Source: Caecitellus pseudoparvulus (lineage: Eukaryota > Protista > Bigyra: Bicosoecida). From it: 64,000 bases of DNA. The stretch spans positions 496,001-560,000 of the forward strand of contig CBFFRQ010000032.1 in NCBI GenBank assembly GCA_965644315.1, read 5' to 3'. The translations under genes were made by a program, and so were the position numbers. How positions within the stretch are numbered: the stretch's first letter is position 1; each line of letters opens with the position of its first letter. The notes beneath the pieces were generated by a model. The model worked only from the letters and a program-made list of their open reading frames with translations. It was not told the origin of the DNA and searched no databases. Shown here piece by piece: positions 38,701-57,862 of this stretch.

Positions 38701-41700
38701 GTGGACGTGTCTGTCGCGTCAGTGGAGGGGGACGGGGACGTGACGCAGTGCACCGTCACCACTGTGGGCGGCGGTATCGACGTGGCAGGAGCATGCAAGG
38801 AAGCACTCCGCTCTGTCTTGGCAGCGTGCAAGGTGGCTGGTCTGGTGGTGGGCATGCGCGTCAGCGGGGCGGGGGTCACCCTGCGCCCCCCCCGCCACGC
38901 TGCTGAGCTGCACCTGCCTGCGGCCGCTGCCCACACCACACAGGTGTGTACGGTGCAGCTGCAGAGCAGCCTGCTCTTCGCCGTGCGTCGCTCCACCAAG
39001 CGCAGTGGCAGTCGGCGACCCAGTGCCCGGTGCGAACGCCAGGCCATTGCCGCGCTGCGCGATTTCTTGGGAGTCTGGATGAGCGGCGCGCGGGGCGCTG
39101 GCGTGCGCGTGGATGTGGCGAGCAGCGTGCAGCCAGCGCCACAGGACCCGGCCACGCCGACGCCACACCTGCTGTCGTTCCCCGAGCCGGGTACATCCGA
39201 GGGTGGTGCTGCCACCCCTGCCCCCGCTCTGTCCCTGCCCAAGGCCGAAGGCACCGTCATCCTCACACCCTCCCTGCACTTGCTGCCGCAGGAGGAGGGC
39301 GAGGAGGCGCCGCCCGGGTCCCTGGCCAGCTTCACAGTGTCTGCCACGGCGCAGTCCGCCCTGTCCACGGCCGTGCAGGGCCGGGCGCGCGGCCCCGGTG
39401 CTGCGCGTGCCAGGCTGCAGTGGGTGGTGCTGGGCCTGGCCCTGCGCGGCCTGGCCCCCTGGCCCTGCCTCGTGCAGTGGGCGCTGGGCGGAGGCAACAC
39501 CGCTCAGGTGGTGCCCCGCCAGTGCAACGGCGGGGGCTGGTTCCGGCTGTCCCACCTGGACCGCCCGCCACGCGTGCGAGCCGTGTCCGCTGCCACCGCC
39601 GACGCCTGGCCCGTCACCTGCCCCTTGCTCGTGTGGGCTGGCGCCGCAGACGTGTCTGCCTCCCTGCTCCCAGGCGGCGGCGCGGTGCGGGTCTTCAACG
39701 GCGGCACGCGCACCGCCTTCCTGTGCACGGCAGGGAGCGAGGACCCCGTGGAGCCCCAGGCGCTCCTGCTGCCCCCCGGCAACTCTGCCGTGCTGCAGGT
39801 GAGGGACATGTCTGACGCCAGCATGCTGACGGAGGCAGGCGAGGCGTCCCTACGAGTGCCAGTGTCTCTGCTGTGGGGCACCGAGGCTGGTCGGCGCCGG
39901 TGGGCGTACCGCCTGGCCTGTGCGGCCGGCACTGTCGGCTCCACTCCCCGCGGCATGAAGCGCCTCTTGCGGTGCGGAGCGCTCTCGCAAGGCGGTGTGG
40001 AGCATCGCCTGCTCACGGTCCTGCCCTTCTTGGATGAGGGCACGCCTGCCTCGGCGGCTCAGTGTCTCGCCAAGCCGCCACCGCACGTGGCACCGGAACT
40101 GGCGGTGCAGAGCCCAGAAGGCACGACGTGCTCGCCTGGAGTGGGGCCGACTCCCTGGCACGCCACGACGGTTGTCGTGACGCGGCCGTTGGGCGGAGAA
40201 CACAGCCATCGTGACGGCGCCAGCCCACACTCCAGCCTGTGTGCCTCTGACGTGGAGGATGTGGAGACACTCGGCAGCCAGCCCACACCCGAGTGCAGCA
40301 GCCTCCCTAGTCCCAGGGCAGTGCCTGCTGTGCCATCGCAGGGAACAAGCACAGTGGCAGACTCGCCAGGGCCAGCCGCCCTCCACAGCACGCCAACTGG
40401 GACCCCAGAGGATGCCGCTGACACTGTGGGGGGCAGCGACCACACAGGCAGACATGGCGACGCCAGCAGGGCTGAAGGGGGGGCTCAGGTCGTGGACACG
40501 GTGGCTCTGCAGCCGCGCGCATCGCCCCCTCAGCCGCTGCCTCCCTCCCTGCTGCACCCTTCCTCGACACGCCCAGCAGCCGTGCTGCGCCAGTTCACGC
40601 AGCGCCCACAGGAAGGGGGGTCTGTGCGCCACCCGCAGTCTGAGACTTCCCCCCTGCGTCACTTGCGGGAACAGCTGACGGTGGCTGCTGAGCAAGCGCG
40701 TGGCTTCACGGCGCACCCCATGCCGACAGGAGAAGTGACTGCCACCACGGCTGTGTCAGATGCAGTCTCGGACTTCTTGGCAGGCATGCCCACCGACACG
40801 CTCAGCATCAGTAGTGTGGACCTGTCGGAGGACGGCTTGGGCGTGTTGGGCGCCGTGGGTGAGCTGGCCCAGCTGCTGCCAGCACGTCAACGGGAGGCAC
40901 CGGCAGACGGCCCCAGCGCAAGCGGCGGCCAAGGACACGCAGCAGCGCGCTGTGTTTCTTGGGCCAGCAGCACCTGCAGCGACGTAGGGGAGGCGGAGGC
41001 GGCTGCGGCAGCGACCCCCCCCGAGCCCCACGCGACGCCCAGCGACGTTGGCAGCAGCGTGTCTCGATCAGGCCCCGCCCAGGCGCCAGCTCCCGCCCCG
41101 CCACGCCCCGTGGACATTGCTGCGACCAGTCCCAACTGGTACGTGCACCCAGAGTGTGCTGCGGTGACGTGGCGTGGGGGGCTCCGCTCAGGCCCAGCAC
41201 TGCGCCTCGTCAACCGCGGCCCCACGGCCGTGCACCTGGCCTTCGCAGCCACTGTGCCCTGGTTCGCCCCCGAGCCAGCCTTCGGGACGCTGCCTGCGCA
41301 CAGCTCCCTCACCGTCGTCCTACGCCAGGCGGCAGGGGACGCCGCTCCCTTGCTGCAGCACGTGGCGGCTGCCGCCGGTGGCGGGGACAGTGTGGACAAC
41401 CAGGCCTTGGTCGCGGCGGTCAACTGCGAGGGGGGCGGGCGCCTGTCCAAGTCGCTGGGCACCTTCGTGTGTGCCCTGGGCGTGGTGCCGCTGCCACTCT
41501 CTGCCGCAGGGCGTGGCGTGCATGCGGCCGTGAGCGGTGACTCGCTCGCCTTCGCACAGGTGGTGCGCGTGACCCTCACACGCAGCGCACTGCAGGACAT
41601 GGGCGTCGCCGAGGCAGTGGGCCTGCAGGACGCCTCCTTCTCCACTGCGGGGGATGCCACCGCCACCACCGCCTCCTTCGCCGCCTCCCTCTCCACGCTC

Positions 41701-42654
41701 TCACTGGGCACCGGCCGCCCTCGCCGCAACGTATCGGACAGCGCCACCCAGACTGAGCAGGAGCAAGCTGCCTTTCCTCCCAGCCCCGCCTCGTCAGCGA
41801 CAGAGTCTGCGCGTATGGGCGAGACGGGTGTGCAGATTGTACACTCTGAGCCGTCTCCCGTGCGGGAGCGGGCATCACCTGCTGCGCCCACGTCCACGCG
41901 CAGCGGCACACCAACAGGCACGCCGCAGCACAGCACGGTGCGCACAACACCCACCCCCCCTTCGTCAGGCGGCACGGGTGCTGGGGACAGCCTCGCAGAG
42001 GTGCGGCTGGGCGACTCGTGGAGCAGCTTGGGCGCCGCCTCTGCTTCTCGCTTGCCCCACCTCCTGGCACTGCGGGCACGGCTGTCCACGCCCTGCCCCC
42101 CCTCGCCAGCGTCACCTCCTGCTCTGCCACCTCAGCGCTGCCTGGTGCAGCCACTGCCGCAGCGAGTGCGGTTAGTGGCCCCCGCCACTCCAAGCTCGCC
42201 TGCGGCAAGTCCCCCCCCTGCCACCCGCCGTGACGCCGCCACATCTCCCAGCCACCGCACTCCGCAGCAGGATGCCACCCCTGCGAAGCACTTGCGATGC
42301 ATTACCTTCGCGCCAGCTGCTGAGGGGCAGGTGTCTCGAGTGCGGGTGCAGGTGTGCAACAGGGGTGGGCAACCCGTCACAGCCACCGTGCAACTGAGCG
42401 TCTTGCTGCGCCAGGAAGGCGAAATGGTCGTGTCGCCACTGCGGAACCGACACTGCGCCTTCTTCGTGAAGCCGCAACATGCCTGCTTCACCATCCAGCC
42501 TGGCACCTTCGCCATGCTGCCCGTGTACTTCTGCCCCTCTCGCAGCGACAGTGTCAGCCGGGCTGTACTGCGTGTGGCCAGTCTGGGCACAGACGGAGCC
42601 ACGCGGCACCTGCACGCGGAGGCCTTGCTAGTGGGCGCCACAGCTCGCTCGTGA
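35725..42654 (+). CDS. CEP192: CEP192/Spd-2-like centrosomal scaffold (2,309 aa) with C-terminal ASH/PapD-like Ig folds
   Basis: Intronless ORF with a long S/T/P-rich acidic disordered N-terminus. The segment VRVFNGGTRTAFL...VEPQALLLPPGNSAVLQV...VSLLWGTEAGRRRW (~39685-39903) resembles the Spd-2 region NxGxRxAF...GxExxR. ASH-like domains occur at ~41137-41330 (LRLVNRG...PEPAFGTLPAHSSLTVVL) and ~42290-42650 (VQVCNRG...FFVKPQHACFTIQPGTFAMLPVYFCP). Confidence 0.65.
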   Translation: MDHDDSQDGRSMLFASLAPSAGPEDTQSEGILAGLSPFPEFGAANPAPHEEGPVDKSRRESLPFSVSMSMSSHSMLRERSSANVQTARSGKAATAPTAAGSPPRPSPQAASDAAFAEVLDEISTIDLTSPAKQRSRKASVDGGHGEPAGALPGAISASSAAATSEAAGMQSAGQLRLADLHHPGIVPATPHTARMVADFDRKLNALVWSPTVGSGELGVDTPRSTSGSEVLTASSHGATPSSACVGDMSDAALAALAGEAAFSPLPPGSASGLSFEEAVTTAAAVKEQSREGETGGPDGMDQLSFVSEITQVSEEGGTGHGATPHATPTLLNTPPSGGTMSLGTGTSSSSGTTPPGANSARGTPVAPHSATCIPSALPSLPEAGVEDEEEEEEEEEDGSPQPRVWHGTPPMAQAPPVCSSRSSSTAEPAAEVVTPSTRSSRPTPPPAQHAPTQRGEEGVQEVHSQPGGVQEGGSDPWDWDVPNALQEGQESGDDSDASVYVSGAAAEALLQAAAEDIEDAHRFQIGQRELQEQSGADLSGVLPATSFGASPATSTASSASSGGEGGFTPFFQQQSGPMGSLSGKATTARRPAFASAAGGQPHGVQPAQARQAGGRPRRRLARTPGAGSPAHTSEPAPAEGATPPQSPPQAGGDTPPALEAQPRASSVPPRRSVASPHTLATTARTVARSSTPPPSRHAGLDSSPQPTPALTLPRPGPAATPLANPSATPQRPLLRPRPSSQARNAQPPQQHRAEHRTATDVTRDAAADRVPDGVPAPTVPRLDASPPTQPTTLAPAKPPTVSSTAAGRNAEAAQPPHRHVLACILQVPRASAGCELRASAGQPATVHFPVRAAFEHRHSACDVTLQASLRLEDSCPGLLAPALTVSPSATRLSLQGGHLHTAAAQVSVTASVSTRLAQQLPGRCTVFVDLRAVDGHGTATAPCAVPIQLVLEAPPQPAPTPAAQEALSVSDDASTVHQSLDVSAAPSAVDTSVDVSVASVEGDGDVTQCTVTTVGGGIDVAGACKEALRSVLAACKVAGLVVGMRVSGAGVTLRPPRHAAELHLPAAAAHTTQVCTVQLQSSLLFAVRRSTKRSGSRRPSARCERQAIAALRDFLGVWMSGARGAGVRVDVASSVQPAPQDPATPTPHLLSFPEPGTSEGGAATPAPALSLPKAEGTVILTPSLHLLPQEEGEEAPPGSLASFTVSATAQSALSTAVQGRARGPGAARARLQWVVLGLALRGLAPWPCLVQWALGGGNTAQVVPRQCNGGGWFRLSHLDRPPRVRAVSAATADAWPVTCPLLVWAGAADVSASLLPGGGAVRVFNGGTRTAFLCTAGSEDPVEPQALLLPPGNSAVLQVRDMSDASMLTEAGEASLRVPVSLLWGTEAGRRRWAYRLACAAGTVGSTPRGMKRLLRCGALSQGGVEHRLLTVLPFLDEGTPASAAQCLAKPPPHVAPELAVQSPEGTTCSPGVGPTPWHATTVVVTRPLGGEHSHRDGASPHSSLCASDVEDVETLGSQPTPECSSLPSPRAVPAVPSQGTSTVADSPGPAALHSTPTGTPEDAADTVGGSDHTGRHGDASRAEGGAQVVDTVALQPRASPPQPLPPSLLHPSSTRPAAVLRQFTQRPQEGGSVRHPQSETSPLRHLREQLTVAAEQARGFTAHPMPTGEVTATTAVSDAVSDFLAGMPTDTLSISSVDLSEDGLGVLGAVGELAQLLPARQREAPADGPSASGGQGHAAARCVSWASSTCSDVGEAEAAAAATPPEPHATPSDVGSSVSRSGPAQAPAPAPPRPVDIAATSPNWYVHPECAAVTWRGGLRSGPALRLVNRGPTAVHLAFAATVPWFAPEPAFGTLPAHSSLTVVLRQAAGDAAPLLQHVAAAAGGGDSVDNQALVAAVNCEGGGRLSKSLGTFVCALGVVPLPLSAAGRGVHAAVSGDSLAFAQVVRVTLTRSALQDMGVAEAVGLQDASFSTAGDATATTASFAASLSTLSLGTGRPRRNVSDSATQTEQEQAAFPPSPASSATESARMGETGVQIVHSEPSPVRERASPAAPTSTRSGTPTGTPQHSTVRTTPTPPSSGGTGAGDSLAEVRLGDSWSSLGAASASRLPHLLALRARLSTPCPPSPASPPALPPQRCLVQPLPQRVRLVAPATPSSPAASPPPATRRDAATSPSHRTPQQDATPAKHLRCITFAPAAEGQVSRVRVQVCNRGGQPVTATVQLSVLLRQEGEMVVSPLRNRHCAFFVKPQHACFTIQPGTFAMLPVYFCPSRSDSVSRAVLRVASLGTDGATRHLHAEALLVGATARS
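36886..36912 (+). repeat. (GAG)9 trinucleotide repeat encoding poly-Glu in the CEP192-like gene
   Basis: Nine perfect GAG units flanked by GAT codons (EDEEEEEEEEED). Confidence 0.95.
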
Positions 42655-43718: not shown

Positions 43719-46700
43719 TCAACTGCCGCTGGACACGAGTCGGTTGCAGAATCGCCCCGCAGCCGCACACACTGTGCTGACGCTGAGGTTGCGCTCAATG
43801 GAGGAGACCTTGTTGCCGTACTTGACAGCCATGAAGAGGAAGTACACTGTGAGGGCAATGAAGGCCATGTTCACAGTGACGATCAGACCCGTCACCGCCA
43901 GGCGTGTCTCATTGCCGCAGTTGTCGCACGCGAACAGGTACAAGCCGCCCTGGAGGGTGAGGATGGAGGTGATGATGGAGTACATCTCCTGTTGGTTCAG
44001 CAGCTTCTTGCCGAACGGCATGGCACGCGTGTGCACCACGACGAACGCCGTCAGCACCACCAGAGCCAACATGGTCTGTGACACGATGCCCAGCGGCGCC
44101 AGCAGCACGCCCATGACTGCGAACAGCACCTTGCGCAGCATGGTGAGTTCCTCCCACCAGTAGTACTGCGGCTTGAAGGAGGCGTACAGGAAGCCGAAAG
44201 TCGCGCGCACGTTGGGGTCGGTTTGCAGCTGGGTGCGTCGGCTCCACAGCACGGCGAAGGCGCCTGCTGGGATGCCGAATGCGTACAGCACGAAGAAGGG
44301 GACGCCGACGCCGTACATCCACACGGCTGTGCTGGGGTCGTTGCACTGCACAGCTTTGTCCGCCACCAGGAACTGGTCATCACTGCCGTCGATGGAGGTG
44401 CAGGTGAACAGGCGCAGCGTGATGCGGGTGAGTGTGGGGTGGATGAGGAACGCTGTCACGATGACGGACACGAAGAAGTACGACCAGTGGCTCTGCCCCG
44501 ACAGCTTGCCGTGCAGCGCCGAGGAGCTGGCGATGTCCCAGCTGCGCTTGGCTGTAGCCTCCTTGGGCGACGCGCCCGCCTGCAGCGCCGCGGCGGTGGC
44601 AGTGGCCCGCTTCAGGGCCAGGTGGGACTCCGCACGGGCTTCCGCACGACTGTCGTAGCCCCGCTCATCTGCCATGGCGTCCCCTCCCATGGTCTCCTCT
44701 TCCTCCTCGCTCTCCTCCGAGGCCTTCGTGGCAGTGGCTAGGGGCAGCGGCACGTCGGAGGGCGAACGGGGCGCGGCTGTCGCCCACGCAGCAGAGCCCT
44801 CCTCACTGCTCGACACGGAGGCGCTGAGGGAGGGCCGGGGCTTGGGCACGAGGGCGACGTGGGAGGGTGACGGGTCACGAATACTGGAGTGCTGGGGGGC
44901 GATGGACACCGCGGGGCCGCTGGAGGCAGCGCCCGAAGGCGAGCTGACCTCCACCACTTCGTCGCCACTGGCAGCGACGGGGGAGGCCTTCTCCTTGAGC
45001 GTGTCGTCCAGCACCTCCACGTCCCCGGTCACCTTGCTGGCGGCAGCCGGCGGGGGCTTGGGCTTAGACTCGTCCTCCCCCAGGTCCACTGGGGCTGCAT
45101 CCCCCACCACGTCCAAGCCGTGCACAGAGTGCCCCTGCTGCACGTCTTTGTCCCTGCAGCGCTCGCAGCACATCCGGTTCCACACGTGGCGCTCCCAGAT
45201 GGCAGGGCACCCCAGTCCGTAGTGCAGCAGCCAGAAGCCAGCCAGGAAGAGGAACAGGATCCAGGGCAGGGAGATCATGACGATGGCCCGCAGGAAGAAG
45301 GCCGAGCCTTGCAGCAGGGAGAAGACGTCCGTGGTGGACGCCACGCAGTCCGGAGACACCAGCTGGTCGCTCACTGACGACGCCGCGTCAATGCCAGTGA
45401 ACATGCGCTCCACGACACCCGGCCACTTCAGCGGGAACGAGGCAGCCATGGCCACCACCTGCAGGTGTGTGAACAGGTTCTTCAAAATCGCCACTGGCAG
45501 CTTGCCTGGCTGGCCCTTAGCCTTGAGCGCCATGAAGGTCATGCCGCCCACCACCACCACTGCCAGCAGGGAGCCGCCTGCCAGCGCGACCACGTTCAGC
45601 GTCGGCGAACTGCACTGAGCACAGCCAGCCTTGCCCTGCCTGGCGTAGTTGGGGGCACAGCGGTTGCACAGTGTGCCAGTGTACCCGTCCGCGCAGGAGT
45701 CAGCGGCTGACGCGAGGCCTGCCGAAGTCTCGTTGGCGAACACGAAGGTGGTCGCGTTGCCGACAGTGCGCATGACTGCGTCAGGCGACTCGGACATGCG
45801 GGCCGCACTGCTGTGCATGCCCAGGGCGCTGGGCAGCACATAGAAGGCGGAAGGATCGCTGTCCTCTTCGTACCCCGCGCAGGCGGTCGGTTCGTCACAC
45901 TCGGCGAAGATGAGGGGATCCCACGGCGTGCGCCAGAAGCCAGCGCGCACGACGACTCGGTGGGCAGGCTGTCCACCACAGTACGCTCCGCTGGGGCAGG
46001 CTGTGCAGACAACGTCCACCAGGTCGGGCGCATTCGTGGCCAAGTACTGACTGTCCGAGCACACGTCGAAGACGGGGGGTGTGGGGAAGCTGAAGGGAGA
46101 CCTGCCAGCCGCATTCACAGCGACGACACGGAACAGGTATGGTGGGGCCTGGAACACGCTGTCTGCCAGGGTGTAGCGACGGGCTTCGTAGTTGGCAGCC
46201 TGCATGCGCCGGGCAGCCCGCTGCAAGGCGCTGCGCAGCTCGGGGGAGATGTCTGCCGCCGCCTCAGCCAGCACTTGCTCCACTGTCAGCACCTCCACGG
46301 TGGTGTCACTCACAGCATGCGTCTGCTTTTCCAGAGCCGCAATTGCCTCGGCATTGCCCAGAGTCATGGTGGTGGCGTTTGTGGTGTAGTACACCTCGAA
46401 GGACGTTGTCGTTGACGCCGAGGACGTGATGTCTGTCAGGGTGATGAACGTGTACTGGATGGTGCGAGCTGCTCCGTCGTCGTCTGCGACGGTGTTTGCT
46501 CGTAGTGCGAGGGGTGCTGGAGGCACATCTCCCGCCCCGAAGTAGCTAAACAGGGTGTTCGGGGCGGACCTGACGCCGACTCGGTTTGTCACCTCCACGC
46601 TCAAGCCGACGTCCTTGAACTGCGTTTCCGGCACGGTGCACTTGAGACGAGTCGTGACGGAGTCAGTGAGGACGTTCCCAGTGGAGCCAGTGATGCCCGT

Positions 46701-49700
46701 GACAACCACACCAACGCATGCCTCGCCTCCGATGCTCACTTGCGAGCTACCAGCAGCTTGCTGCTCAGCCGTGTCATCCCGCGCAACCAAGTCCACGACG
46801 TCAATCACGACAGACTCGCCCACGTCTGCGGTGGCAGGGGCAATGGAGACGACTTGGGGCTGGTGAAGCACACGGATGTGCCTGGTGTTGGTGTTCACCG
46901 AGCCTTGCCCGACGACTGACACGGATCCCTCGGAGATGGTCAACGCGCCATCCACAGCACCCGCAGGCAGGGCGAGGCACCGAACGTTCATGGCATCCAA
47001 GCGCACCCAGGAAGTGCATGGCACGCCAGCCAAGGTTACCATGCTGATGTCAGCTTGCTCGAGGCCAAAGTGCACGCCAGTCAGCGTGAAGTTCGGAGCA
47101 TGTGGCCCCGCGAACATGAACGGCGGATCTACCGAGTCGACCCGCGGGGCTTTGAAGGAGAAGTAGTTAATGGCAGCATCGGGGTCCACCACGGAGCTCG
47201 AACACTGCTGCATGACGCACACTTGGATGAGCTGCTGCTGACCGCGACCCTGGGGGGTGACGATGACGAGGCGACCGTCGTTTGACCACGTGACATGCTG
47301 GGCCATGTGTGCGCCAACGTGCACAATGACCTGGCCTTCAGCCTGCAAGTCTTTAGATGCTGTTGCGTGCTTGAAAACGGCGGCATCTGAGAAATTCAGG
47401 GCGCTGAAGCCACTGCCGAGGAGCACCACTTCGTCGCCGCCCCCCACCTCGCCGTTCGCATTCGGCAAGGTGGCGAAGAGTTGGGGGGGGTTGTATGAGT
47501 ACACTCGGGCTGGGGAAATAGTGTGCCCGCCACTGGTCTCATCGAGGAACGAAGCAGTGTCCAGTTGCCCATCCACACGGACACGGACTGTCCAGTTGCC
47601 GCCCACACCGGGAGGCACGGTGCAGGTGACGTAGCTCGTGGATGCGTCGCCCGTCCGGACAAAGGTTGGGCTGGAGCATGAGCGCAGCTGGAACTTTGGG
47701 TGTTGAAGCGTCACTGCGTCGACCGTGTGCTGCCCTCCCGAGAAGGGGTCGCTGCTGGACGCGGCGAAGCCACACGCTTGACCTTCCGCTCCCAGCCCGC
47801 TGGCATCGATGCGCAGCAGCACACCCCCCGTGCTGGGAATGCCAAGCAAGTCCTGGCTGGCAAGTGCCACGCCTAGCACCTGGGGTCGGCGGAAGCCCAC
47901 AGTGTACGAGGGGCGAGGGTTCACATGCCCTTCGGTGGAGGACTCTGGGAGCTTCCAAGAGGACTGCTCATACCAGGCATCCCCAGAAGCGTCCACCTGC
48001 CCATTCACGGTGACGCGGGGGATCCAACCAGTGCCAACACCAGACGGCATGGGGACTGTCAGGGCCGTGTCATTGATATGAGAGGGGAAGGCGGTTGCGC
48101 CGAGGTCCAGGCGACTGCAGGCAGAGTGGTCTGGGCGCTCCCAGTGTACTTGGATGCTGCCTCCTGTTCGCCCCGGCGTGCCGAAGTTCAAGCCAGTGAT
48201 GGTGACAGTGGAGCCTGCTTGCACGACAGAGGGGAACTGCTGCGTGATGAGAGGCCTGTCGTACGAGAACACCGAAGTGCTTGTTCCGGACCCCGTCGGG
48301 AGGGACACCGTCACCTGCGGAGTGGCACCCGTGCCCTCTGGCAGGGTGCAGTCTACCCGATGCGTGGGCAGCGAAACCACAGCAAGTGTGCCAGCCACAA
48401 GCGGGCACTGCGCCCCAAACACAGACACGGTCAGGTCATCTTCGTTCACCAGGCCAGGGCGAGTAGCAAGGTCAATGGGGCTGACGTCAAATGAAACCTG
48501 GATGACAGTGCCGCCAGCGGTGGGAGCAGTGCGGGGCAGGACTGCAGATACCACGACTGGGTCGGATGGTGGGTAAAAGCGCGCCACTTCCCCCCGCCGC
48601 CATTGCGCTGGGACGTCAAAGGGGTCTCCGAACTCGGAAAAGGAATACACGACGCCTTGAAGCTGTGATACATGCACGAGACGCCCCCACGAGGGGTGGT
48701 TGAAGTGTGTGTGGGGCTCCCACTGGAACGCTGTCCCCGAAGGGTCCATGCTCTCCCAGGGCGTGAAGATGCGCCCCGCGACAAGCTCGGCACTGATGCG
48801 AGGGTTCGCAGAGGAGCCGCCCAGCCCAGTGATGGACTCTCCAAAGCTCGGGAAAGGGGCATCTTGGGTCGCCTCCCCCACCTCAGTGGAGAAGGAGGTG
48901 AGGGGGACTGCCGGAAGATCCCTCAGCTGCACGTTGGGCACTGTCACCCGTGCACTGAGCGCTACCTGCGTTCCATCGTCACCTTCTGCCTCGGCAACAG
49001 CCTCCAGCTCCAACACTTGAACAGCTGCGACTGCAGCATTGGCAGTCACGCTCTGGCGCGGGTTGTGCTTCAGCAGGCGCTCGCCACCGAATGCATACAG
49101 TGTGCCGTCTTGCTGCACGACGGCAGGGCGCACCAGGGGAATGCGGAGACGAGGGCCGTGCTGCCTCCAGGCTTTGCGGGAAAGGTCGAAGACGTCAATT
49201 GACGTGTACGGGCGCTCGTCATCACCCAGACACACCTCCTCACTGAAAGAGTCAGCGTTGGCCAGAGCGTCTGCCGTCCACCAGTCCGTCTCGTTGCTGG
49301 TCACCAGCTGCTGCTCAGTCCCTGTCACTCGCTGCTCCTTGCGCCAGAATCGAGGTTTCCACCACTCGGCTGACGAGGAGTCAAACAAGCCAGCATTGCT
49401 TGCGATGCGGGTCGTGCTCTGGTCAGGCAGTTCTGAGCGGGAGCCTCCAGCCACCTGCAACGCACGCCTGTCGCATTGACCACCGTCAAAGCCGCAGAAG
49501 GAATGGTCACAAGCAACGTCACATTCTGTGTTCTGGGTCAAGCCGATATCGGGGCACTCCGTGCCGACTAAGCACTTATACACGTCGATGCCACTGGGAG
49601 GGTCTGTGGGGCAGTCCCCGTCATCGAATCCACACTTCAGAGTGTTGCAGTCTGCTTGGCAGGTTCCGTCTCCTAGCATGCCGGGCAGACAACCGTCCAG

Positions 49701-52700
49701 AAAGCACGAGTCGGTTTGTTGAGAGCAAGCCTCGTATGGAATGGAGCCAGTAGCATCATAAGGTGGCCTGGAACAGGCCCACGAATTGCACACTGAGTCA
49801 CACTCGTCGTCTCGAAGGAAGAAAGGATTGCATCCAGACTCAGCACACAGCTCCGCATCATTGAGCAGCACGTTGGGGCAGCCATCGAAGGAGATCTCCC
49901 CCACGCCACAGCTGGGATGGAGGCACTCCATGTCACACTGGCCATTGCCGATTTTACTGGCCGGGAAGTCGCATCCGTGGTCCTGGCAGATGGATAGATC
50001 GGCGATTCCCTTCTGTGTGATCGTCGCCGAGGCTGGGTTCTGTACACTGCACCGCAGCTGCTGGATGGGTCCGCACTCCGGACGGTTGCAAGCTGTTTTG
50101 CACACAGAACTCGTGGCTTGTGCTATGTTTGGGCAGCCATTGACGATGCAGGGCTTAACTTCGGGAATGTTGGGTTCATGTGGGCCACAATCGCCAGCAT
50201 CAAAGCCGCAGGCGTAGAAGTCGCACGCCGGATCACAGGTCCCATCACCGAAACTCGACACTGCACACCCACTGCTCTGCACACGAGCAGGGCATGTCTG
50301 CGGCCCTTGATTTGAGCAGAGCTGGAGATCATCGCCTGGCCTGCACTCGTCAATGTTGCAATCCGGGTCGCATGCTCCATTATTCACTTTCCTCGCGTCA
50401 CGGCAACCCTTCGCGAGACACTGAGCCATGTCAACACCACGCTGGGCTTTGCGTGCACACCTTCCATTATCATGGCCACATTCGGGCTTGTTGCAGACCT
50501 GGTCGCAGTTATTATTGTCTAGCAACTCTGGCGTGCACTCATGGAAGTCAAAGCACATGTGCCTGGGCCCGGAGCCTTGCTTGTTGCCATCGTCAAGTGC
50601 CCCTGCCACTCCGTTGGCAATGGCGATCGGGTCAGCGCCGCGCGGGACATCAGGGGGCAGGGTGGACGTGACTTCACCCGAACCAGACTCCACGTCGCAC
50701 TCCTTTCGACCCCCCACGAGCCAAACTTGATCCCCCACCAGCACCGCACCAGCCTGGTCACGGCCGAAGGGCATGTCAGGGAACACGCTGTCCACCCAGC
50801 CTGGGTTCTGTGCTGACGTATTGTAAGTCTCTATTGTGTGGACGAAGGTGACGTTGTCCACAATGAGGTAAGGCTGCTTCCACTGAGCTCGTTCGGCGTG
50901 GGAGCTCTTGACCTGCACGCCGCCCAGAACGACAAGGGCTTCATCATCCACGTTTACAACGTTGAAGTCCTCTCGTGGTGTCAAGAGAGGCGGGCCGCTG
51001 CGCCACACGCCAGATGACACATTGAAGATGGCAACAGAGGAGGTGCTTTGCCCACTGGCACCATTCAGTGGTTCCGAGGCAGAGTACAAGCCTGAGTCTG
51101 GGCTACGCGTTGGTGCCGTATTGCCACCGATAAGCCACAGCTCGCCTTGGAAGGCGATGAACTGGAATCGGCTCCGCTGGGGTTCCGCTGGGGCTTGTCC
51201 TGTGCTGGGTATGGTCTCCCAGGCTGCCCCTGCGCCGGCCATGCGCCACAGATCCACGCGGGCAGCGGACTCCAACGACTCGGTAGGAAAGAACACTTGT
51301 CTTGAGGCTTGCTGGAGTTCCGTTGGATACGTGACACTCGTCAGCAGCGGGTTGACTTTGGAAGTTGGCAGGTAGTGCGTGTCTGGGCGCTGCCGCACAA
51401 AGGCAGAGCCGACAGCCAGGCGCTCTCGACCTCCTCGTCCACCAGAGCCACCTGACACAGTCTCTGATTGCGCATAAAGCAAGATGTCGTTGAACCACTC
51501 ATCTGTGGAGGAGGCATTTCTGACACTCTCTGGGATGAGGGAGGCGTAAGGATCTTCTTCGGATTGCAAGTGCCGCAGAGTGCCAGAATGGTGCGCGTCC
51601 AGCCCACCGCAGGCAGGCGTTCGGCAATGATGACCAGATGACACCGTATCATCGTCCGCAGTGCCATCCAGAAGGAAGTTTGCCGAGTCACATCCATCCC
51701 GTAGGCAGTGGGCCATGTTGAACGAGCTAAAGAAGGGCACCGCATGATCGGCAAAGGCTTCGATGTGCGTGCCACAGTCCCCCATGTCATAGCCACAGGA
51801 AGGAATATTACAGCCTGCTTGACACCTGCCATCTCCCAGCTGCCCAGGCAGCGTGCAGGAAGCCCCACACCTAGCATTGAAGGGTCCTGACGCGACTCCA
51901 GATTTTGGCGTGCACCCGCCCAGGCGCTCCTCGGCGGTGCCACAGGCTGCAGTGTGGCAGTCGGGGTCACACTCATCGTTCAGCAGCAACAGCAGTGAGG
52001 GGCAGCCGCTTGCGAGGCACGTGCCCCAAGTCTCAGGCATCAGCTCCCCAGATCCACCGGCCTCGAGGCTCGCGTACGTGCCATCGCAGTCGCCCCCGTC
52101 GTACAGACAAGCGGGAATGTCGCAGTTGGGTGTGGTGTTGTCACAGTTGCCGTCGCCGAGCTTGGACTGGCAGCCTGCAGGGCAGGCGTTCCGTTCGTTG
52201 GTGGTGTAGTCGTAGAGATCACCAGCGCAAGCGTATCGCTCCTCTTCCCCACAGGACGGGTCAAGACAGGCAGGCGCATCACAGTCGCCACCGAGATCTG
52301 CAAGCGTGCATGTGTCGTCGCAGAATTGTGAGTCCACTGGGCCGGGCTCCGCTGGTGCACAGAAAGGTCCAGCGTTCAGAATGTCCAGGTTGCCACACGC
52401 GGGAGCCTGGCAAGCGCTTTCGCTGGGGGTAGCAAGGCGTGATGCGTGGCATTTTTCGTCGAGTAAGTGCATGGCAGAGTGGCAATCACCACCCAGGCAC
52501 AGGCCGAGGTCGAAGTTGGCTCCTTTGTCAGCCAAAGCCAACGAATGGATCTTCACACCACAATCCCCCATGTCAAAGCCACAGGTAGGGGTGTTGCAGT
52601 CGGGATCACACACTCCATCTCCAATGTTGCTGGTCGTGCACACATCAGAGCACTTGCCGGAGAACTCCGCAGCCGTCCAATGTGCTGGCACAGGGTCGCA

Positions 52701-55700
52701 GCCGCCAAGAACCACCTCAGCATTGCCACAGTCTGCGTGAAGGCACGTTGCGTCGCACGTATGGTCGTACAGATTGTACACTGACTTGCAGCCACTCTGC
52801 AGGCAGGCTTTTACACTCGTTGGGTGCTCCAGGATACCGGCAGATCCAGAAAACCAGGGTTGTGACTCACTGCCCTCGGTTAGGCAGTCGCCATCGTCGT
52901 ACCCACAGGAAGGAGTATCGCAGTATGGCGAGCCCAGATTGCAGTTGCCGTCATTGATGGTGGAAACGCAAGAGGCGGGGCAGGAGTTGCGCATCATGGG
53001 GCTAGAAGAGATGGCGGGCTGCGCCAAGCAGACCTCAGTCTCGGCGTTGCCGCAGACTGGGTTCAGGCACTCTGAATCGCAGTTCGTGTTCTGCCGCTTC
53101 GCAAGCGAGCAAGATCCAGCAGTGCAAGCTGTCATGTCAAAGACGTCCCTGAAGCACGCATCTTCATCAAGTGAGCCGCAGGCGGGGCTGCGACAGTCCA
53201 CGTAGTCACACGTGTCATCCACTAGGCGCATGGCGTTTGCACAGGTGCTGCTCAGGCAATCGGACATGTCGAACTGACTGTCAACGCTGACCAGGTCTTC
53301 AGTGACCAATCCGCAGTCTCCATGATCAAAAGCACACGCGGGCACGAAGCACTGTGGATGGCAGAAGGAGTCACCAACCTTGCTTGTGTCACAGCCAAGA
53401 GAGGCGCAGGTCTGCTCCAGCTCGTCCGTTCGGGCCCAGTTCGAGCTGAGAGGCACGCACCCACCAAGAAGCACCTCTGCTGTGCCACATTCAGGAGTGT
53501 TGCACTCTTCGTGGCAGATGTTGTCGGTGAGGAACATGATGGAAGGGCAGCCGCTTTGCAAGCACTCCCGTGCTGATGAGCCGAAGTACGTTGCCCTGGA
53601 GAAGTCCACGGCATCTATGCTCGTGGCCCCGATGTCTCCGTCGTCAAAGTTGCACGCGGGGACGTCGCATGCCGCGTTTTCAACACCGTTCCCGATCGTG
53701 GCGATGTTGCAAGTCGTCGCATGGCAGTCTTCAAGCTGGTCAGATGTGTAGCTACTCTCTGAGAACCCAGGGCAGTTGTCTCGGGCAATGGTGCCACAGG
53801 CGGGATGCAGGCATTCGTAGACACAGTTTGTGCCCGTTGCAGCGCCCTGGGATGGGCACCCGGCTTGGGAGCACAGGCCCCAGTCTGGGCCGGGGAAGCT
53901 GGAGCCCCCGCCACCCCCACCACAGTTCTGCCCAGTGCAACCATTGTTGCCGTCATCGGTGCTGGAGGATCCCGTGAACGATCCAGTCGCGGGGTCTCGG
54001 GCTGACTGGTAGTACGTGCCTCCGGAGTTGGCAAAGAGGAAGTCCCCGTCAGCATTGCCCGCCATGCCCACGACGTGGGTGCTGGGAACGTCCAGGCCGT
54101 CCACTTGGAAGTCCAGCGTTTGGGCGAGGGCGGCGCCACGGGTGGTGCCTGAGCCATACAGAGTGACGACTTCACTCTCAGCCACATGCGTGGCATTGTA
54201 CAGCACAGCCCGCAGCTTCGATTGGCGGGGATCTCCGGCAGCGCGGACTTGGTACGGAGGACGAATGGGGCCGCTGCCTCCTCCACCCCCTCCGCCTGGC
54301 TGCCCGTCCTGCAGCACGAGTGCCTCGGTAAAATTGTACGTGTTGGCGCCTGCGATGATGTACACCTCATCCTCTGCAGCTGCAGCCGCCTCATCATAGG
54401 CAGCGCCGTTCGCCAGTGTGATGATGCGAGAGGGCAGCTTGGTGATGTACCGTGCGAAGCCCAAGTAGCCACTTTCTCCCACTCCATCTGCAATGCCAGG
54501 CATGTTCTTCGAGCGGGCCAAGGCCAGGTCATCCACATCTTCCTCATCCACAGCGAGCACGGCCGTGGCTGAGTGCTGGTCCAGGGTGGACTGTGTCGCG
54601 TCGGCGAAGTTCTGCGCCAGTTGGATCGGGCTTGCTTCTGGGTCACCGATGATGGTCTCAATGGCCAGGACGGACTTGATCTCGTCGTCTCTGAAGCTGA
54701 CCCGCCGCAGCAGCCCGGCGATAGGGTCCAGCACCAGCAGGCGCCCCTGCGAGTCCCACTCCATCGAATACCCAACGAAGGGCGTGACGCGGCTCGTGGC
54801 TGCGTCGCCATCTACAGGGTTCCATGTGTCGTCGAGTGCCTTTGCGCCAGGGCCTGTGGGGTCACTCCAGGGGCCGTTTTGCAAGTTCAGCGTGGTAACG
54901 TTCTTGACGTTTCCGTCGTCGTCCAGCCAAGCGCGGCGCAGGGCGGGGCCGTCGAAGAACAGCAGGGAGTTGGTGGAGTTGTCGAACGCCAGAGCCGTCG
55001 GCGCAGTCATGAGCCTGGCTGTGCGGGGTGCTCCGTCCGTGAACGAGTTCCTCGAGATGTTGCAGTTGTCGATGTTGGAGGGTGCCGGCGCGCCGGCCAC
55101 CTCGTACTCGCACACGTCCTCTTCAGCGCTCACCAGCGCTGCCGCGACACGGAACGTCGCCCCAGAAGCAAAGGCGCGGCGGATGGTTCCAAAACCCTGC
55201 GAGGGGTGGCAGGTGAGGTGTGTGGGGGCAGGTAGCGCAGAGGGTTCGACAGCTGGTCACGCACGCGCTCGGTGAAGTAGATGTCGCAGGAGCGGGGGCT
55301 GACGACGAGCCCCAGGATGTGCCCCAGGCGAGTCGCCCGCCCATTGGAGGCAATGGTGGTCCCAGCGGACGTCGCTGGGACGTTGCGCTTGCCAGCGACC
55401 TCCCGCTTGGCAAAGCCGGTTTCCTGGCCGCCGACCAGAAACATCTGGTAGTTTGCGGAGTCCACGAGGACGACCTCGTTGCCACAGGCCGGCGCCATGT
55501 GGTTACCGATGGACTGGAAGGCCATCTGGCCGTCACCGGAGCCAACGTCGGTGTCTGGATTGGAGCCTGTGGCAGGAAAGCAGCGGTGGAAAGGAAGTGC
55601 AGTGCAGCAGCGCAGTTGTAACGTGGGGCTGGCCGTACCTCCGAGGACGGCACCGCCGCTCCATATGGCTGCGAAGGATCGTGGTGTAGGCGTGGAAGTG

Positions 55701-55880
55701 AGAAGGGAACGCAAGGGAGGCAAGGCACGCGGCAGGGAGCATCTGTGGGACTGCTTGAGTGCCCATCGATCACTCACTGGCAGGCGTTGTTGCGTGGGCG
55801 TCTTCGAACACGAGCACACCCAGCGACAAGAGCAGCCCAAGCGAGCACAAGGACGCCTTGAATGGAGTACGCAGCGCCAT
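43719..55880 (-). CDS. Giant cell-surface polytopic receptor-like protein (~3,970 aa): signal peptide, NHL propeller, LNR arrays, Kelch, IPT/TIG, FN3, Cys-rich, ~9 TM
   Basis: Exons 55880-55778 (signal peptide MALRTPFKASLCSLGLLLSLGVLVFEDAHA), 55668-55639, 55566-55265 and 55196-43719 join in frame. Motifs in order: NHL-like (IYFTERGFGTIRR, APTALAFD); LNR-like CxxxxIGDGxCDxxCNxxxCGFDxGDC; Kelch (LWLIGG, LVVLGG, VWLVGG, LYAFGG); IPT (PTAGGTVI, VTITGLNFG, VVLLGSGF, FTLTGVHFG); FN3 (YLFRVVAVNAAGRSPFS); CADGYTGTLCNRC; and a TM block with FGFLYASFKPQYYWWEELTMLRK. Confidence 0.88.
49473..50555 (-). repeat. Array 2 of 8 LNR (Lin-12/Notch)-like Cys-rich modules
   Basis: Examples: CAVSSFGDGTCDPACDFYACGFDAGDC, CLPGMLGDGTCQADCNTLKCGFDDGDC, CDVACDHSFCGFDGGQC. 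Confidence 0.85.
51595..53885 (-). repeat. Array 1 of 15 LNR-like modules organised as three copies of a 5-module unit
   Basis: Examples: CTTSNIGDGVCDPDCNTPTCGFDMGDC and CLQSGCPS...CGTAEVLLGGC. Module types recur with period 5. Confidence 0.85.
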
Positions 55881-56139: not shown

Positions 56140-57510
56140 TTACCTCTTGCTGGAGGGCGGGAGGGCGGCAGCGTCTGCTCCATCTCGTGCCCGCTTGCTC
56201 CCCCCAATATCAGCACTTTGCACAGTGCCCCCAGGCGCAGGCTTGGTGGGTCCACCATCACAAGCGCCACTTGCCGCTGCAGAAACACCCGCTGGCGCAG
56301 GTGAAGCCTCAGCCGCCGCGGCTGCGAACGCTTTCGCAGCACTCAAGTGCATGCCTTTGGGCGTCACTTGCACCCGCTCATACAGCAGCACGTACGCTGG
56401 CTGGGCCAGGGCGGTTTCCGCGTCCACTTTCCGCACGGCGCCGTCATCAGCCTCCCACCACTGCTTGCCCTTGCGCAGGAACGCAGTGTAGTGGCCACAC
56501 CGGGGAGAAGGCCCTTTGTGCACAACAAGGGCCCGCAGAGTGTACAGGGGCCGTTTGCTGGGGTGTGGCCCCGCGAGAGGGTGGCTGTGCAAGGCTGTGT
56601 CATGCACTTCTTTGCGCAGCACAAGGTGCGACAGAGAGAGCGAGAGGGGGAACGACAGCCCACCCCCAGCCTTCGTGATGCGTTGGTGATGTGCTGCAGC
56701 AGCCCCCTTCATCCATGCCTGCAGCGAGGGCGGCGCTGCGGCGCTGGCGGCCGGCGTGCTGGCGTGTGCGAAACGCAGCAGGTGAATGGCCAGCGCTTCA
56801 GGCGCAGCTGCCAGTCCCAGTTGCTTCTTCGCAGACACCTTATCCGCACAAGCTGCACAAGCATATGCAGAGGAGCCAGTGAGCTGCTCTGTTGCGAAGT
56901 GAGCCTTCAGCGCTTGGTCAAGGGTGGCGTGTCCCGCGATGTCCAGAGAGAGCGCCTCCACATCTTGAAACGTGTCCGAAACGCCGTTGCAGGCGCTGCA
57001 GACGATGCGGGACACCATGCGACCTCGGAAGATGGAGCAGGGGCCAGTGCCTGCCGCATCTGCTACATCGGCACATGCTGCTAAAATGCCCAGCAACAGC
57101 TCGTGGGCGTCTTCCTGTCGCCTGTGCCGCAGACCTGAGACGGCACGCACAGCAGCTGCGACAAGTGCAGACGGAGTCAGAGCAGACTGCCCGCCACTCG
57201 ACTGCTGCAGCTGCTGGTGTGTCAGCAACAGCGCCTCCAGCAGCTGGTGCTGTGCTCGAAGTTTCCCAGACGGCGCCTCCTCACGTCTCGCTGCGTTGCA
57301 CAAGAACCACAGGAGCTGGGGGAAGGCAGCGACATTGCACAGTCCCTGCACCATGGAGTTCAGGTAGCACGTGCTTCCCAGGTTGGCCATGCCCCGTGTT
57401 GTGGAGGTCGTCGCCTGTGGAAGTGGCTCGGCAAGCAATTTCCGCAGCAGCTGCTGCTCTGCAAATGCCTCAGCCTCGTCCGCCTGAGATGGGGGTGCAG
57501 CTGGATTCAT
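56140..57510 (-). CDS. Ubiquitin-specific protease (peptidase C19; USP36/42-like), ~456 aa
   Basis: Cys box GMANLGSTCYLNSMVQGL, QEDAHELL, two CxxC Zn-finger pairs, His box LVVHKGPSPRCGHYTAF, WWEADD and AYVLLYER. The likely start is MNPAAPP at 57510. Confidence 0.92.
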   Translation of the reverse strand: MNPAAPPSQADEAEAFAEQQLLRKLLAEPLPQATTSTTRGMANLGSTCYLNSMVQGLCNVAAFPQLLWFLCNAARREEAPSGKLRAQHQLLEALLLTHQQLQQSSGGQSALTPSALVAAAVRAVSGLRHRRQEDAHELLLGILAACADVADAAGTGPCSIFRGRMVSRIVCSACNGVSDTFQDVEALSLDIAGHATLDQALKAHFATEQLTGSSAYACAACADKVSAKKQLGLAAAPEALAIHLLRFAHASTPAASAAAPPSLQAWMKGAAAAHHQRITKAGGGLSFPLSLSLSHLVLRKEVHDTALHSHPLAGPHPSKRPLYTLRALVVHKGPSPRCGHYTAFLRKGKQWWEADDGAVRKVDAETALAQPAYVLLYERVQVTPKGMHLSAAKAFAAAAAEASPAPAGVSAAASGACDGGPTKPAPGGTVQSADIGGSKRARDGADAAALPPSSKR

Positions 57511-57862
57511 TGGCAAATGATGGCGGGAGTCAATCAGATCGACGCAGTGCCTTGTGCTGGCGTCGACCAGGCTTCGCGCTAGCCAAACGCAGCGGGGACT
57601 GGGCAGCGTTTTGAGCTGCCGCACGTCAGAGAAGCTGGCTTGTGAGGAGCGCTCTCAGCGCAGTGGCAGAGTCAAACGCCCCACAAAAAAATCTGACCTG
57701 CTTCAGTTTTGCTGCACTTTAAATTGGCGCAGGCGTCTTGCATAGGCAGAAATCTTCAGTGCGTGGAGCGGGTGAGAAGCAGGATCCAATTGGCCTGAGC
57801 CCGTTGAATGCCGATTCGGAGCAGGGCGGAGCTTCCAGCGTCTACCAGGTGACCTGCAAGCT

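Follow-up and report, generated by a model that had tools for sequence, protein, structure and literature searches.

Giant surface proteins of protists that end in a nine-pass membrane module are reportedly known in stramenopiles as nonagonal cadherins, a name said to have been given by Fletcher, van West and Gachon in 2016. LNR modules, of which Notch, PAPP-A and GNPTAB carry two or three, guard a cleavage site in Notch. The 2016 description of nonagonal cadherins is cited in two other papers (PMC7409359, PMC11603286). The CRMPs (cysteine repeat modular proteins) of Apicomplexa and ciliates, with homologues in Dictyostelium, are described as having large, modular, Cys-rich ectodomains and a conserved core in which EGF-like or ephrin-receptor-like domains are combined with nine helices, the N-terminus lying outside and the C-terminus in the cytosol, and as acting in contact-triggered exocytosis of rhoptries or mucocysts (PMC9670195, PMC9815656). 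In fungi, Pkd2 begins with a signal peptide and combines an extracellular domain with a membrane domain termed 'TRP-like' (PMC6727746); the S. pombe protein is reported to be a putative stretch-activated Ca2+-permeable channel, being permeable to Ca2+ under membrane stretch when reconstituted (PMC9727806), and fungal relatives have also been described as carriers of flavin or as regulating Ca2+ homeostasis (PMC9600462). Here we analyse a 64,000-nucleotide stretch of the genome of the bicosoecid Caecitellus pseudoparvulus (assembly GCA_965644315.1, contig CBFFRQ010000032.1, positions 496,001 to 560,000), referred to below as the window, and within it a single gene for a giant LNR-rich surface protein (43719-55880, minus strand, as are all features of the gene given below).

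What is new in this gene is a combination: two arrays of LNR modules, one of them inside a Kelch domain, mounted on a nine-helix chassis and conserved in three sequence sources. The gene is an unusual variant within a family that is widespread but has been little studied, and it does not represent a novel type of system. Read from the letters alone, the window had been described in an initial annotation as holding one spliced product of about 3,970 residues with a signal peptide, and the frame check returns exactly 3,970 residues (145 + 3,825), with the frame kept across four exons. Searches were made exon by exon, the joined protein serving only to check the continuity of the frame, and residue numbers of domains are counted from position 55133.

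Two LNR arrays on a nine-helix chassis

The Notch/LNR profile PF00066 scores 127 bits in this protein, against a cut-off of 21.2 (E 3.4e-37), and the count of 15 and 8 modules given by the initial annotation holds under the spacing of cysteines (C-x4-6-C-x8-10-C-x3-C-x4-C-x6-9-C). By this spacing, 15 modules lie at residues 421-1175 (array 1, 51609..53939) and eight at residues 1527-1887 (array 2, 49473..50555), giving a total of 23; six cysteines are present in 21 of them and four in the two remaining modules, which stand at array edges. Individually, Pfam scores eight modules in array 1 and seven in array 2. Array 1 aligns with itself as about three copies of a super-repeat of five modules, each of some 255 residues and mutually 41-42% identical. 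In their six-cysteine spacing the modules resemble the LNRs of Notch, PAPP-A and GNPTAB, and 10 of the 23 keep both G-D-G and the C-x-[FYWH]-D-x-x-D-C signature; they differ from them in number (23 versus 2-3) and in the 13 variants that have no acidic tail.

That Kelch repeats enclose the second array, as had been claimed, is upheld by two profiles above their cut-offs at residues 1290-1480 (Kelch_6, 30.1 bits against 25.3; Kelch_1, 26.3 against 20.1) and by weaker Kelch signals that restart at about residue 1970, past the array. The first three blades, ending in G-G-R-K-E-C, occupy 50697..51296 and the remaining blades 48579..49232, with about six blades counted by eye, and both parts are collinear with uninterrupted parts of the Kelch domains of two paralogues in the same genome, which lie on contigs C44 and C62 and are named after these below. 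The loop that holds array 2 is bounded by the motifs G-G-R-K-[QE]-C and P-Y-T-S-x-D-V-x-D, which are conserved in the paralogues. C44 and C62 are collinear with the query from end to end, from the N-terminal domain to the membrane module, but carry neither array: at the position of array 1 they have a linker of about 160 residues, and at that of array 2 a Kelch loop of about 370-390 residues, which is of low complexity in C44, the one paralogue examined in this respect.

The same order of parts recurs in P0001, an orthologue of 3,467 residues from an ENA contig, at 44% identity and with 10 + 6 LNRs, and a fragment from a third source, P0009, is 74% identical to P0001. Among the best 150 relatives of the membrane module listed, LNRs occur only in these two, and a word-based search at full length for giant LNR-array proteins returned the P0001 orthologue only. 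LNR arrays on a nine-helix chassis appear to be confined to this gene and its orthologues from two other sequence sources. Copy number differs between orthologues (23 in the query, 16 in P0001), and we propose that the modules grew to 15 and 8 at two linker positions through tandem duplication. In the C62 paralogue (locus L003), residues 591-623 of the open frame hold one weak LNR-like module at the site of array 1 (domain E 2.3e-4 with a home-made profile). Since the module is present there, a single LNR may predate the expansion, and the C62 module may represent its seed.

Arrays of many LNRs are also found on other proteins, and the statement in the initial annotation that LNRs typically occur as two or three copies does not extend to these. 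Searching with the array alone returned two proteins, and a scan of metagenomes returned two loci. P0156, a Lys-rich JGI protein of 1,167 aa, has 17 canonical tandem LNRs scored by Pfam and, by eye, a TSP1-like module. L010:320-4438, on metagenome contig Ga0307391_10001786, is an open reading frame of 1,372 residues with at least 12 LNRs by Pfam and more than 20 four-cysteine LNR-like modules by eye, and several hydrophobic helices stand at its N-terminus, before the array. Both share with the query the tandem arrangement of many LNRs, but neither has the nine-helix chassis (in P0156 no nine-pass module is seen by eye), and their identity to the query arrays is only about 25%. P0156, with its 17 tandem LNRs, shows that such long arrays arose more than once; L010 represents a different, and likewise undescribed, way of mounting such an array on a membrane.

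In the C. pseudoparvulus genome, the only other LNR gene (L006, G000:C13:231500-239500, open frame 1485-4814 on the minus strand) encodes a protein of Stealth/GNPTAB type with regions CR1-CR4 and two LNRs. Stealth/GNPTAB-type proteins with two LNRs are a conserved eukaryotic arrangement. A search of the literature on LNRs in stramenopiles and protists yielded a single report, on the brown alga Ectocarpus, in which 16 genes with Notch domains and no Notch receptor were found (PMC3879662).

The nine-helix family and its described relatives

The membrane module at the C-terminal end was modelled with AlphaFold2 (AF2; residues 3141-3804, alignment of 39 relatives), giving helices with pLDDT mostly above 90 and a pTM of 0.68. 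Model and hydropathy together resolve the approximately nine helices of the initial annotation into exactly nine, arranged as three, a long loop, and six. Helices 1-3, with a conserved extracellular loop, occupy 45216..45605 (pLDDT 80-94, with conserved columns); the loop, of about 240 residues, is disordered, rich in Ser, Ala and Glu, presumably cytoplasmic, variable among paralogues and left unaligned between them (44490..45215, pLDDT below 50). Helices 4-9 (43818..44489, pLDDT above 90) comprise the part resembling PF06011 and the FGFLY..K...YWWE.....RK block, already singled out in the initial annotation and here the most conserved part of the family. A short cytoplasmic tail and the stop codon, read from the open frame, follow at 43719..43817. 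Given a signal peptide and nine helices, the N-terminus is predicted to lie outside and the C-terminus inside, and invariant cysteines or conserved pairs of cysteines fall in loops predicted to be extracellular.

The likeness to a TRP-like or FLC-type block that had been suggested for these helices is sound at the level of the family: PF06011 is matched by 19 of the 39 relatives (best E 8.5e-15), and the Atlas neighbours of the module are PF06011 clusters. In the query, the match spans only positions 266-399 of the 426 in the profile. The same predicted fold is found in clusters from Chlorophyta, Haptophyta, Ciliophora and Cnidaria, which carry DUF7630, Ephrin_rec_like or PF06011. Comparison with solved structures returned no match for the module: a Foldseek search of the PDB yielded no hit at E ≤0.001, a wide VIA-align search peaked at Z 7.7, which is at noise level for helical bundles, a profile run against PDB sequences found nothing within the helices, and no TRP or PKD2 chain was among the Foldseek or VIA-align matches. 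Canonical TRP and polycystin subunits have six helices with a pore loop. The nine helices and the fold search both argue against a canonical TRP channel, and this reading is rejected.

Using the last 244 residues as query, at least 67 matching places were found in the genome, which measures 30.6 Mb; they lie mostly at the ends of giant frames, and 47 fall within open frames 2,000 to 8,030 codons long. The paralogues sampled have TIG stalk, Cys-rich region and membrane module in common, with a tip that differs from one to another: Kelch in C44 and C62, RCC1 propellers in C18, C40 and C53, eleven TIG domains in C56, and Ephrin_rec_like, with or without a beta-helix, in C52 and C81. Weak matches to the module also occur in two open frames that bear cadherin domains, C57 (5,061 codons, E 4.8e-5) and C69 (4,528 codons, E 1.3e-4); in three more distant paralogues no cadherin was found, and Ephrin_rec_like, beta-helix or TIG are present instead. 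Several members stand in local groups of two or three, some on opposite strands (C8, 70-95 kb; C50, 66-88 kb; C68, 555-568 kb; C40, 294-307 kb), and this clustering suggests that the family has grown through local duplication. The module is matched at E ≤0.001 by 7,787 cluster representatives in public data; where these proteins are long, the match is placed towards their C-terminus, and a named relative is a Saprolegnia protein of 4,039 residues.

Taken together, these matches point to a large family of eukaryotic proteins, each with a giant modular ectodomain that a Cys-rich juxtamembrane domain connects to nine helices distantly related to fungal Flc/Pkd2 (PF06011). The family ranks among the largest sets of surface proteins in C. 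pseudoparvulus and is common in marine eukaryotes. The suggestion of an undescribed system is not supported, for the chassis occurs at least 67 times in this genome, has thousands of public representatives and overlaps with the nonagonal cadherins already named.

The Cys-rich juxtamembrane region noted at the outset is indeed present (45612..46061), ends three residues before helix 1 and has a DUF7630 or laminin-EGF-like character, with weak matches to DUF7630 (22 bits against a cut-off of 27) and EGF_laminin, both below cut-off. In the same stretch, 29 of the 39 relatives carry DUF7630 and six carry Ephrin_rec_like, the aligned stretch ending in the helices. Such a region just before nine helices, with the same inferred topology, is what links the query to CRMPs; it differs from them in having neither Kringle nor MAR domains. 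The architecture agrees with that of CRMPs as these are described, and the two families possibly overlap. With the nonagonal cadherins, the query shares its giant size, surface location and C-terminal nine-pass module, but its tip is made of the N-terminal domain, LNRs and Kelch rather than cadherin repeats: PF00028 finds none in the query, and a genome-wide cadherin search gave no match to the LNR gene. The module is loosely tied to them through the matches in C57 and C69, whose E-values are weak. As for the fungal Flc/Pkd2/TrpR proteins of PF06011, helices 5-9 of the query match the C-terminal third of the profile, and the signal peptide, extracellular N-terminal domain and cytoplasmic C-terminus have counterparts in Pkd2 (PMC6727746). 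The differences are considerable: a small ML-like ectodomain in the fungal proteins stands against some 3,300 residues in the query, whose membrane module is divided by a long disordered loop and whose PF06011 score is below the cut-off. Finally, the query differs from Notch in having no EGF array, no ankyrin domain and one LNR array placed inside a Kelch domain. NOD and NODP, which form the heterodimerisation domain of Notch, were absent from every Pfam scan of the query, so a negative regulatory region (NRR) of Notch type after the LNRs is not supported. A homologue of Notch is rejected on these grounds.

Receptor, channel, switch or anchor

The product of this gene is probably a receptor for contact or adhesion, situated at the plasma membrane and belonging to the nine-helix family. 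Its distal tip, made of the N-terminal domain and Kelch, would bind a ligand or a surface, be it prey, substratum or another cell, and the LNR arrays would serve as Ca2+-loaded, disulfide-rich spacers or as extra binding modules, lengthening and stiffening the ectodomain. Engagement would be passed on by the TIG/FN3/Cys-rich stalk to the nine-helix core, which would signal inward, either by conducting Ca2+ or through the 240-residue cytoplasmic loop. Across the repertoire, dozens of paralogues swap the distal tip and keep the stalk and the membrane core. Several points weigh against this reading: The canonical acidic tail C-x-[FYWH]-D-x-x-D-C, which supplies Ca2+ ligands, is found in 10 of the 23 LNRs only, and its loss makes Ca2+ binding by the 13 variants doubtful; for the N-terminal domain, the presumed ligand-binding tip, the AF2 model from a five-sequence alignment was unusable (pLDDT 34.6). 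At the other end of the protein, the query scores 25.8 bits with PF06011, below the curated cut-off of 28.5, and no solved structure that might point to a pore or signalling surface matches the membrane module by Foldseek, VIA-align or PDB sequence profile. Surface localisation is deduced from the signal peptide and the types of domain only, and we know of no experiment on any close relative. Of the Ca2+- or force-sensitive receptor, adhesion or channel system supposed in the initial annotation, the receptor or adhesion protein survives, together with a kinship to a family of putative mechanosensitive channels, whereas sensing of Ca2+ by the LNRs is unlikely because the extracellular domain sits in the Ca2+ of seawater.

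The kinship just mentioned is also what commends a different account, in which the nine helices themselves make up a mechanosensitive channel for Ca2+ and the giant ectodomain is a tether that pulls it open. The Ca2+ permeability of reconstituted Pkd2 on membrane stretch (PMC9727806) and the arrangement of signal peptide, extracellular domain and 'TRP-like' domain in that protein (PMC6727746) speak in its favour, and TIG and LNR modules, as a long and rigid stalk, would be well suited to the transmission of force. We nevertheless regard this as rather unlikely, given that the PF06011 match is both partial and below its curated cut-off, that the fold searches brought up neither TRP nor PKD2 nor any other channel, with a best Z at noise level, and that channel function is unsettled even for the fungal relatives, which also figure as flavin carriers or Ca2+ homeostasis regulators (PMC9600462). 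At the opposite extreme, the protein could be a purely structural adhesin or an anchor of the cell coat, in which the nine-helix module does nothing but fix it in the membrane. TIG, FN3-like, Kelch and Cys-rich repeats are typical adhesion domain types, and a large and diversified paralogue repertoire also speaks for it; a nine-helix core whose charged and aromatic motifs are invariant over 7,787 cluster representatives, however, exceeds what an anchor needs, and the fungal relatives affect Ca2+ (PMC9727806, PMC9600462), making a role without signalling unlikely.

A further account turns on short RRxL motifs, which resemble dibasic or subtilase-type processing sites. R-R-A-L stands directly after array 2 (49458..49469) as a candidate site of proteolytic processing, and after array 1 a degraded form of the motif, L-R-H-L-Q, is found (51555-51569). 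In a comparison of the query, L001, L002, L003, P0004 and P0009, RRxL is kept at the Kelch-insert position homologous to R-R-A-L in five of the six sequences and in the first linker in four of the five that cover it; a third site lies in a loop of the TIG region in P0001, P0009 and L002. On this basis the LNR arrays and the RRxL sites that follow them might form a force- or Ca2+-dependent proteolytic switch, akin to the Notch NRR, on a Pkd2-related, Ca2+-conducting nine-helix core, or the whole might act as a Notch-like proteolytic mechanoreceptor, with the arrays shielding RRxL sites until force or loss of Ca2+ exposes them and shedding or activation ensues. The precedent of the Notch LNRs is established knowledge; in the query as well as in P0001 and P0009, array 2 is directly followed by RRxL, a motif also present in the homologous linkers of paralogues, and composition alone would lead one to expect about 0.5 such motifs in the whole protein. 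The presence of RRxL in paralogues that have no LNRs, however, makes the motif independent of the arrays, the query has only a degraded L-R-H-L after array 1, NOD and NODP were not found in Pfam scans, seawater Ca2+ should keep the LNRs loaded, and cleavage at RRxL is itself only a candidate event, so that both the switch and the mechanoreceptor seem very improbable. To a last alternative, that two or more genes or a pseudogene have been read as one, we give almost no credence. Support from RNA extends to one of three introns and the comparison with reads to the 5' half of the gene, but 3,825 codons run without a stop, the order of parts is kept uninterrupted in orthologues at 44% identity, and paralogues are collinear from the N-terminal domain to the membrane module. 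The unbroken exon, the same part order in P0001 and the match of P0009 argue for a single conserved gene, and an artefact of two genes in particular is rejected on the strength of the collinear orthologues.

For a receptor of this kind, the LNR arrays offer biochemically tractable material for assays of Ca2+ binding and folding, with the two array-less paralogues, C44 and C62, as natural controls, and the conserved candidate cleavage sites provide a further experimental handle. Taken singly, the LNR gene is one more domain combination in a domain-shuffled family. Should it be true that the family is a contact-gated Ca2+ signalling machinery, it would link fungal Pkd2/Flc, the CRMPs of parasites and the adhesion repertoires of free-living protists; and if an LNR/RRxL switch did operate on a Ca2+-conducting core, this would constitute an independent, non-animal way of converting mechanical contact to signal.

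Gene model, N-terminal domain and stalk

The gene has four exons and three short introns, all at its 5' end and all GT..AG. Exon 1 (55778..55880, 103 nt) starts with the ATG at 55880 and encodes a signal peptide of about 30 residues, with a positive n-region, a hydrophobic core of 15 residues and A-H-A before the likely cleavage point; it was placed by reading of the sequence and the frame check and lies outside the cover of RNA contigs. Intron 1 (55669..55777, 109 nt) is followed by exon 2 (55639..55668, 30 nt), which is contained in a spliced contig from a marine metatranscriptome (run X1). Intron 2 (55567..55638, 72 nt) is spliced out of this contig and still present in run X5, a DNA-like run of a close strain whose depth is even at about 41. 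Exon 3 (55265..55566, 302 nt) encodes the first part of a beta-rich N-terminal domain and is covered by the X1 contig; it is 37% identical to the orthologue locus L001:1367-1669, and in both the similarity ends at Y-F-T-E-R. Intron 3 (55197..55264, 68 nt) is required by the frame, that of exon 4 being stopped inside it.

Exon 4 (43719..55196, about 11.5 kb) contributes 3,825 codons without a stop, in a frame that is open over 3,845 codons in the six-frame view and that, counted from its first start codon, gives the minus-strand open reading frame 43719-55133 of 3,804 codons. The comparison with reads rests on the 5' half of the gene: X1 contigs tile 50598-55669 at 95-99% identity, from which it follows that a near-identical strain is represented by contigs in the RNA libraries. 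No RNA joint across introns 1 and 3 was seen in these contigs. Of the three 5' introns predicted initially, the second is thus borne out by RNA, and introns 1 and 3 are deduced from continuity of the frame (with splice consensus for intron 1), a stop that closes the exon-4 frame within intron 3, and the exon-3 end kept in the orthologue.

The remainder of the N-terminal domain (54009..55196, about 375 residues) brings its total to about 490 residues; the domain is conserved in the orthologues and in C44 and C62, the only two paralogues that share it. The NHL-like propeller which the initial annotation had placed here could not be substantiated. Pfam returned nothing relevant at E up to 10, a profile search of the PDB was blank, hhalign against one NHL protein of the same genome gave a probability of 1.4%, a six-frame NHL search of the genome did not include the LNR gene among its matches, and the AF2 model, as noted above, was unusable; language-model features alone point to NHL (0.95, at low recognition). 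The label describes a motif-level resemblance and is not proven.

Between the Kelch domain and the Cys-rich region lies the stalk. The several IPT/TIG domains claimed for it number six (46530..48578, at about residues 2186-2868), with PF01833 scoring 61.6 bits against a cut-off of 20.9 in two and four stretches. The following domain, with an insertion of about 60 residues (46068..46529), had been called FN3 and may at most be termed FN3-like: fn3 scores 12.7 bits against a cut-off of 25 (E 0.15) and covers only the F-G strand motif, one relative has fn3 at E 5.9e-12 within the aligned stretch, and the label is not proven for the query.

Long open reading frames on either side of the LNR gene belong to separate genes, at 56140-57624 on the minus strand and at 35725-42654 on the plus strand. 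The latter, of 2,309 codons, is convergent with the 3' end of the LNR gene across a gap of about 1 kb.

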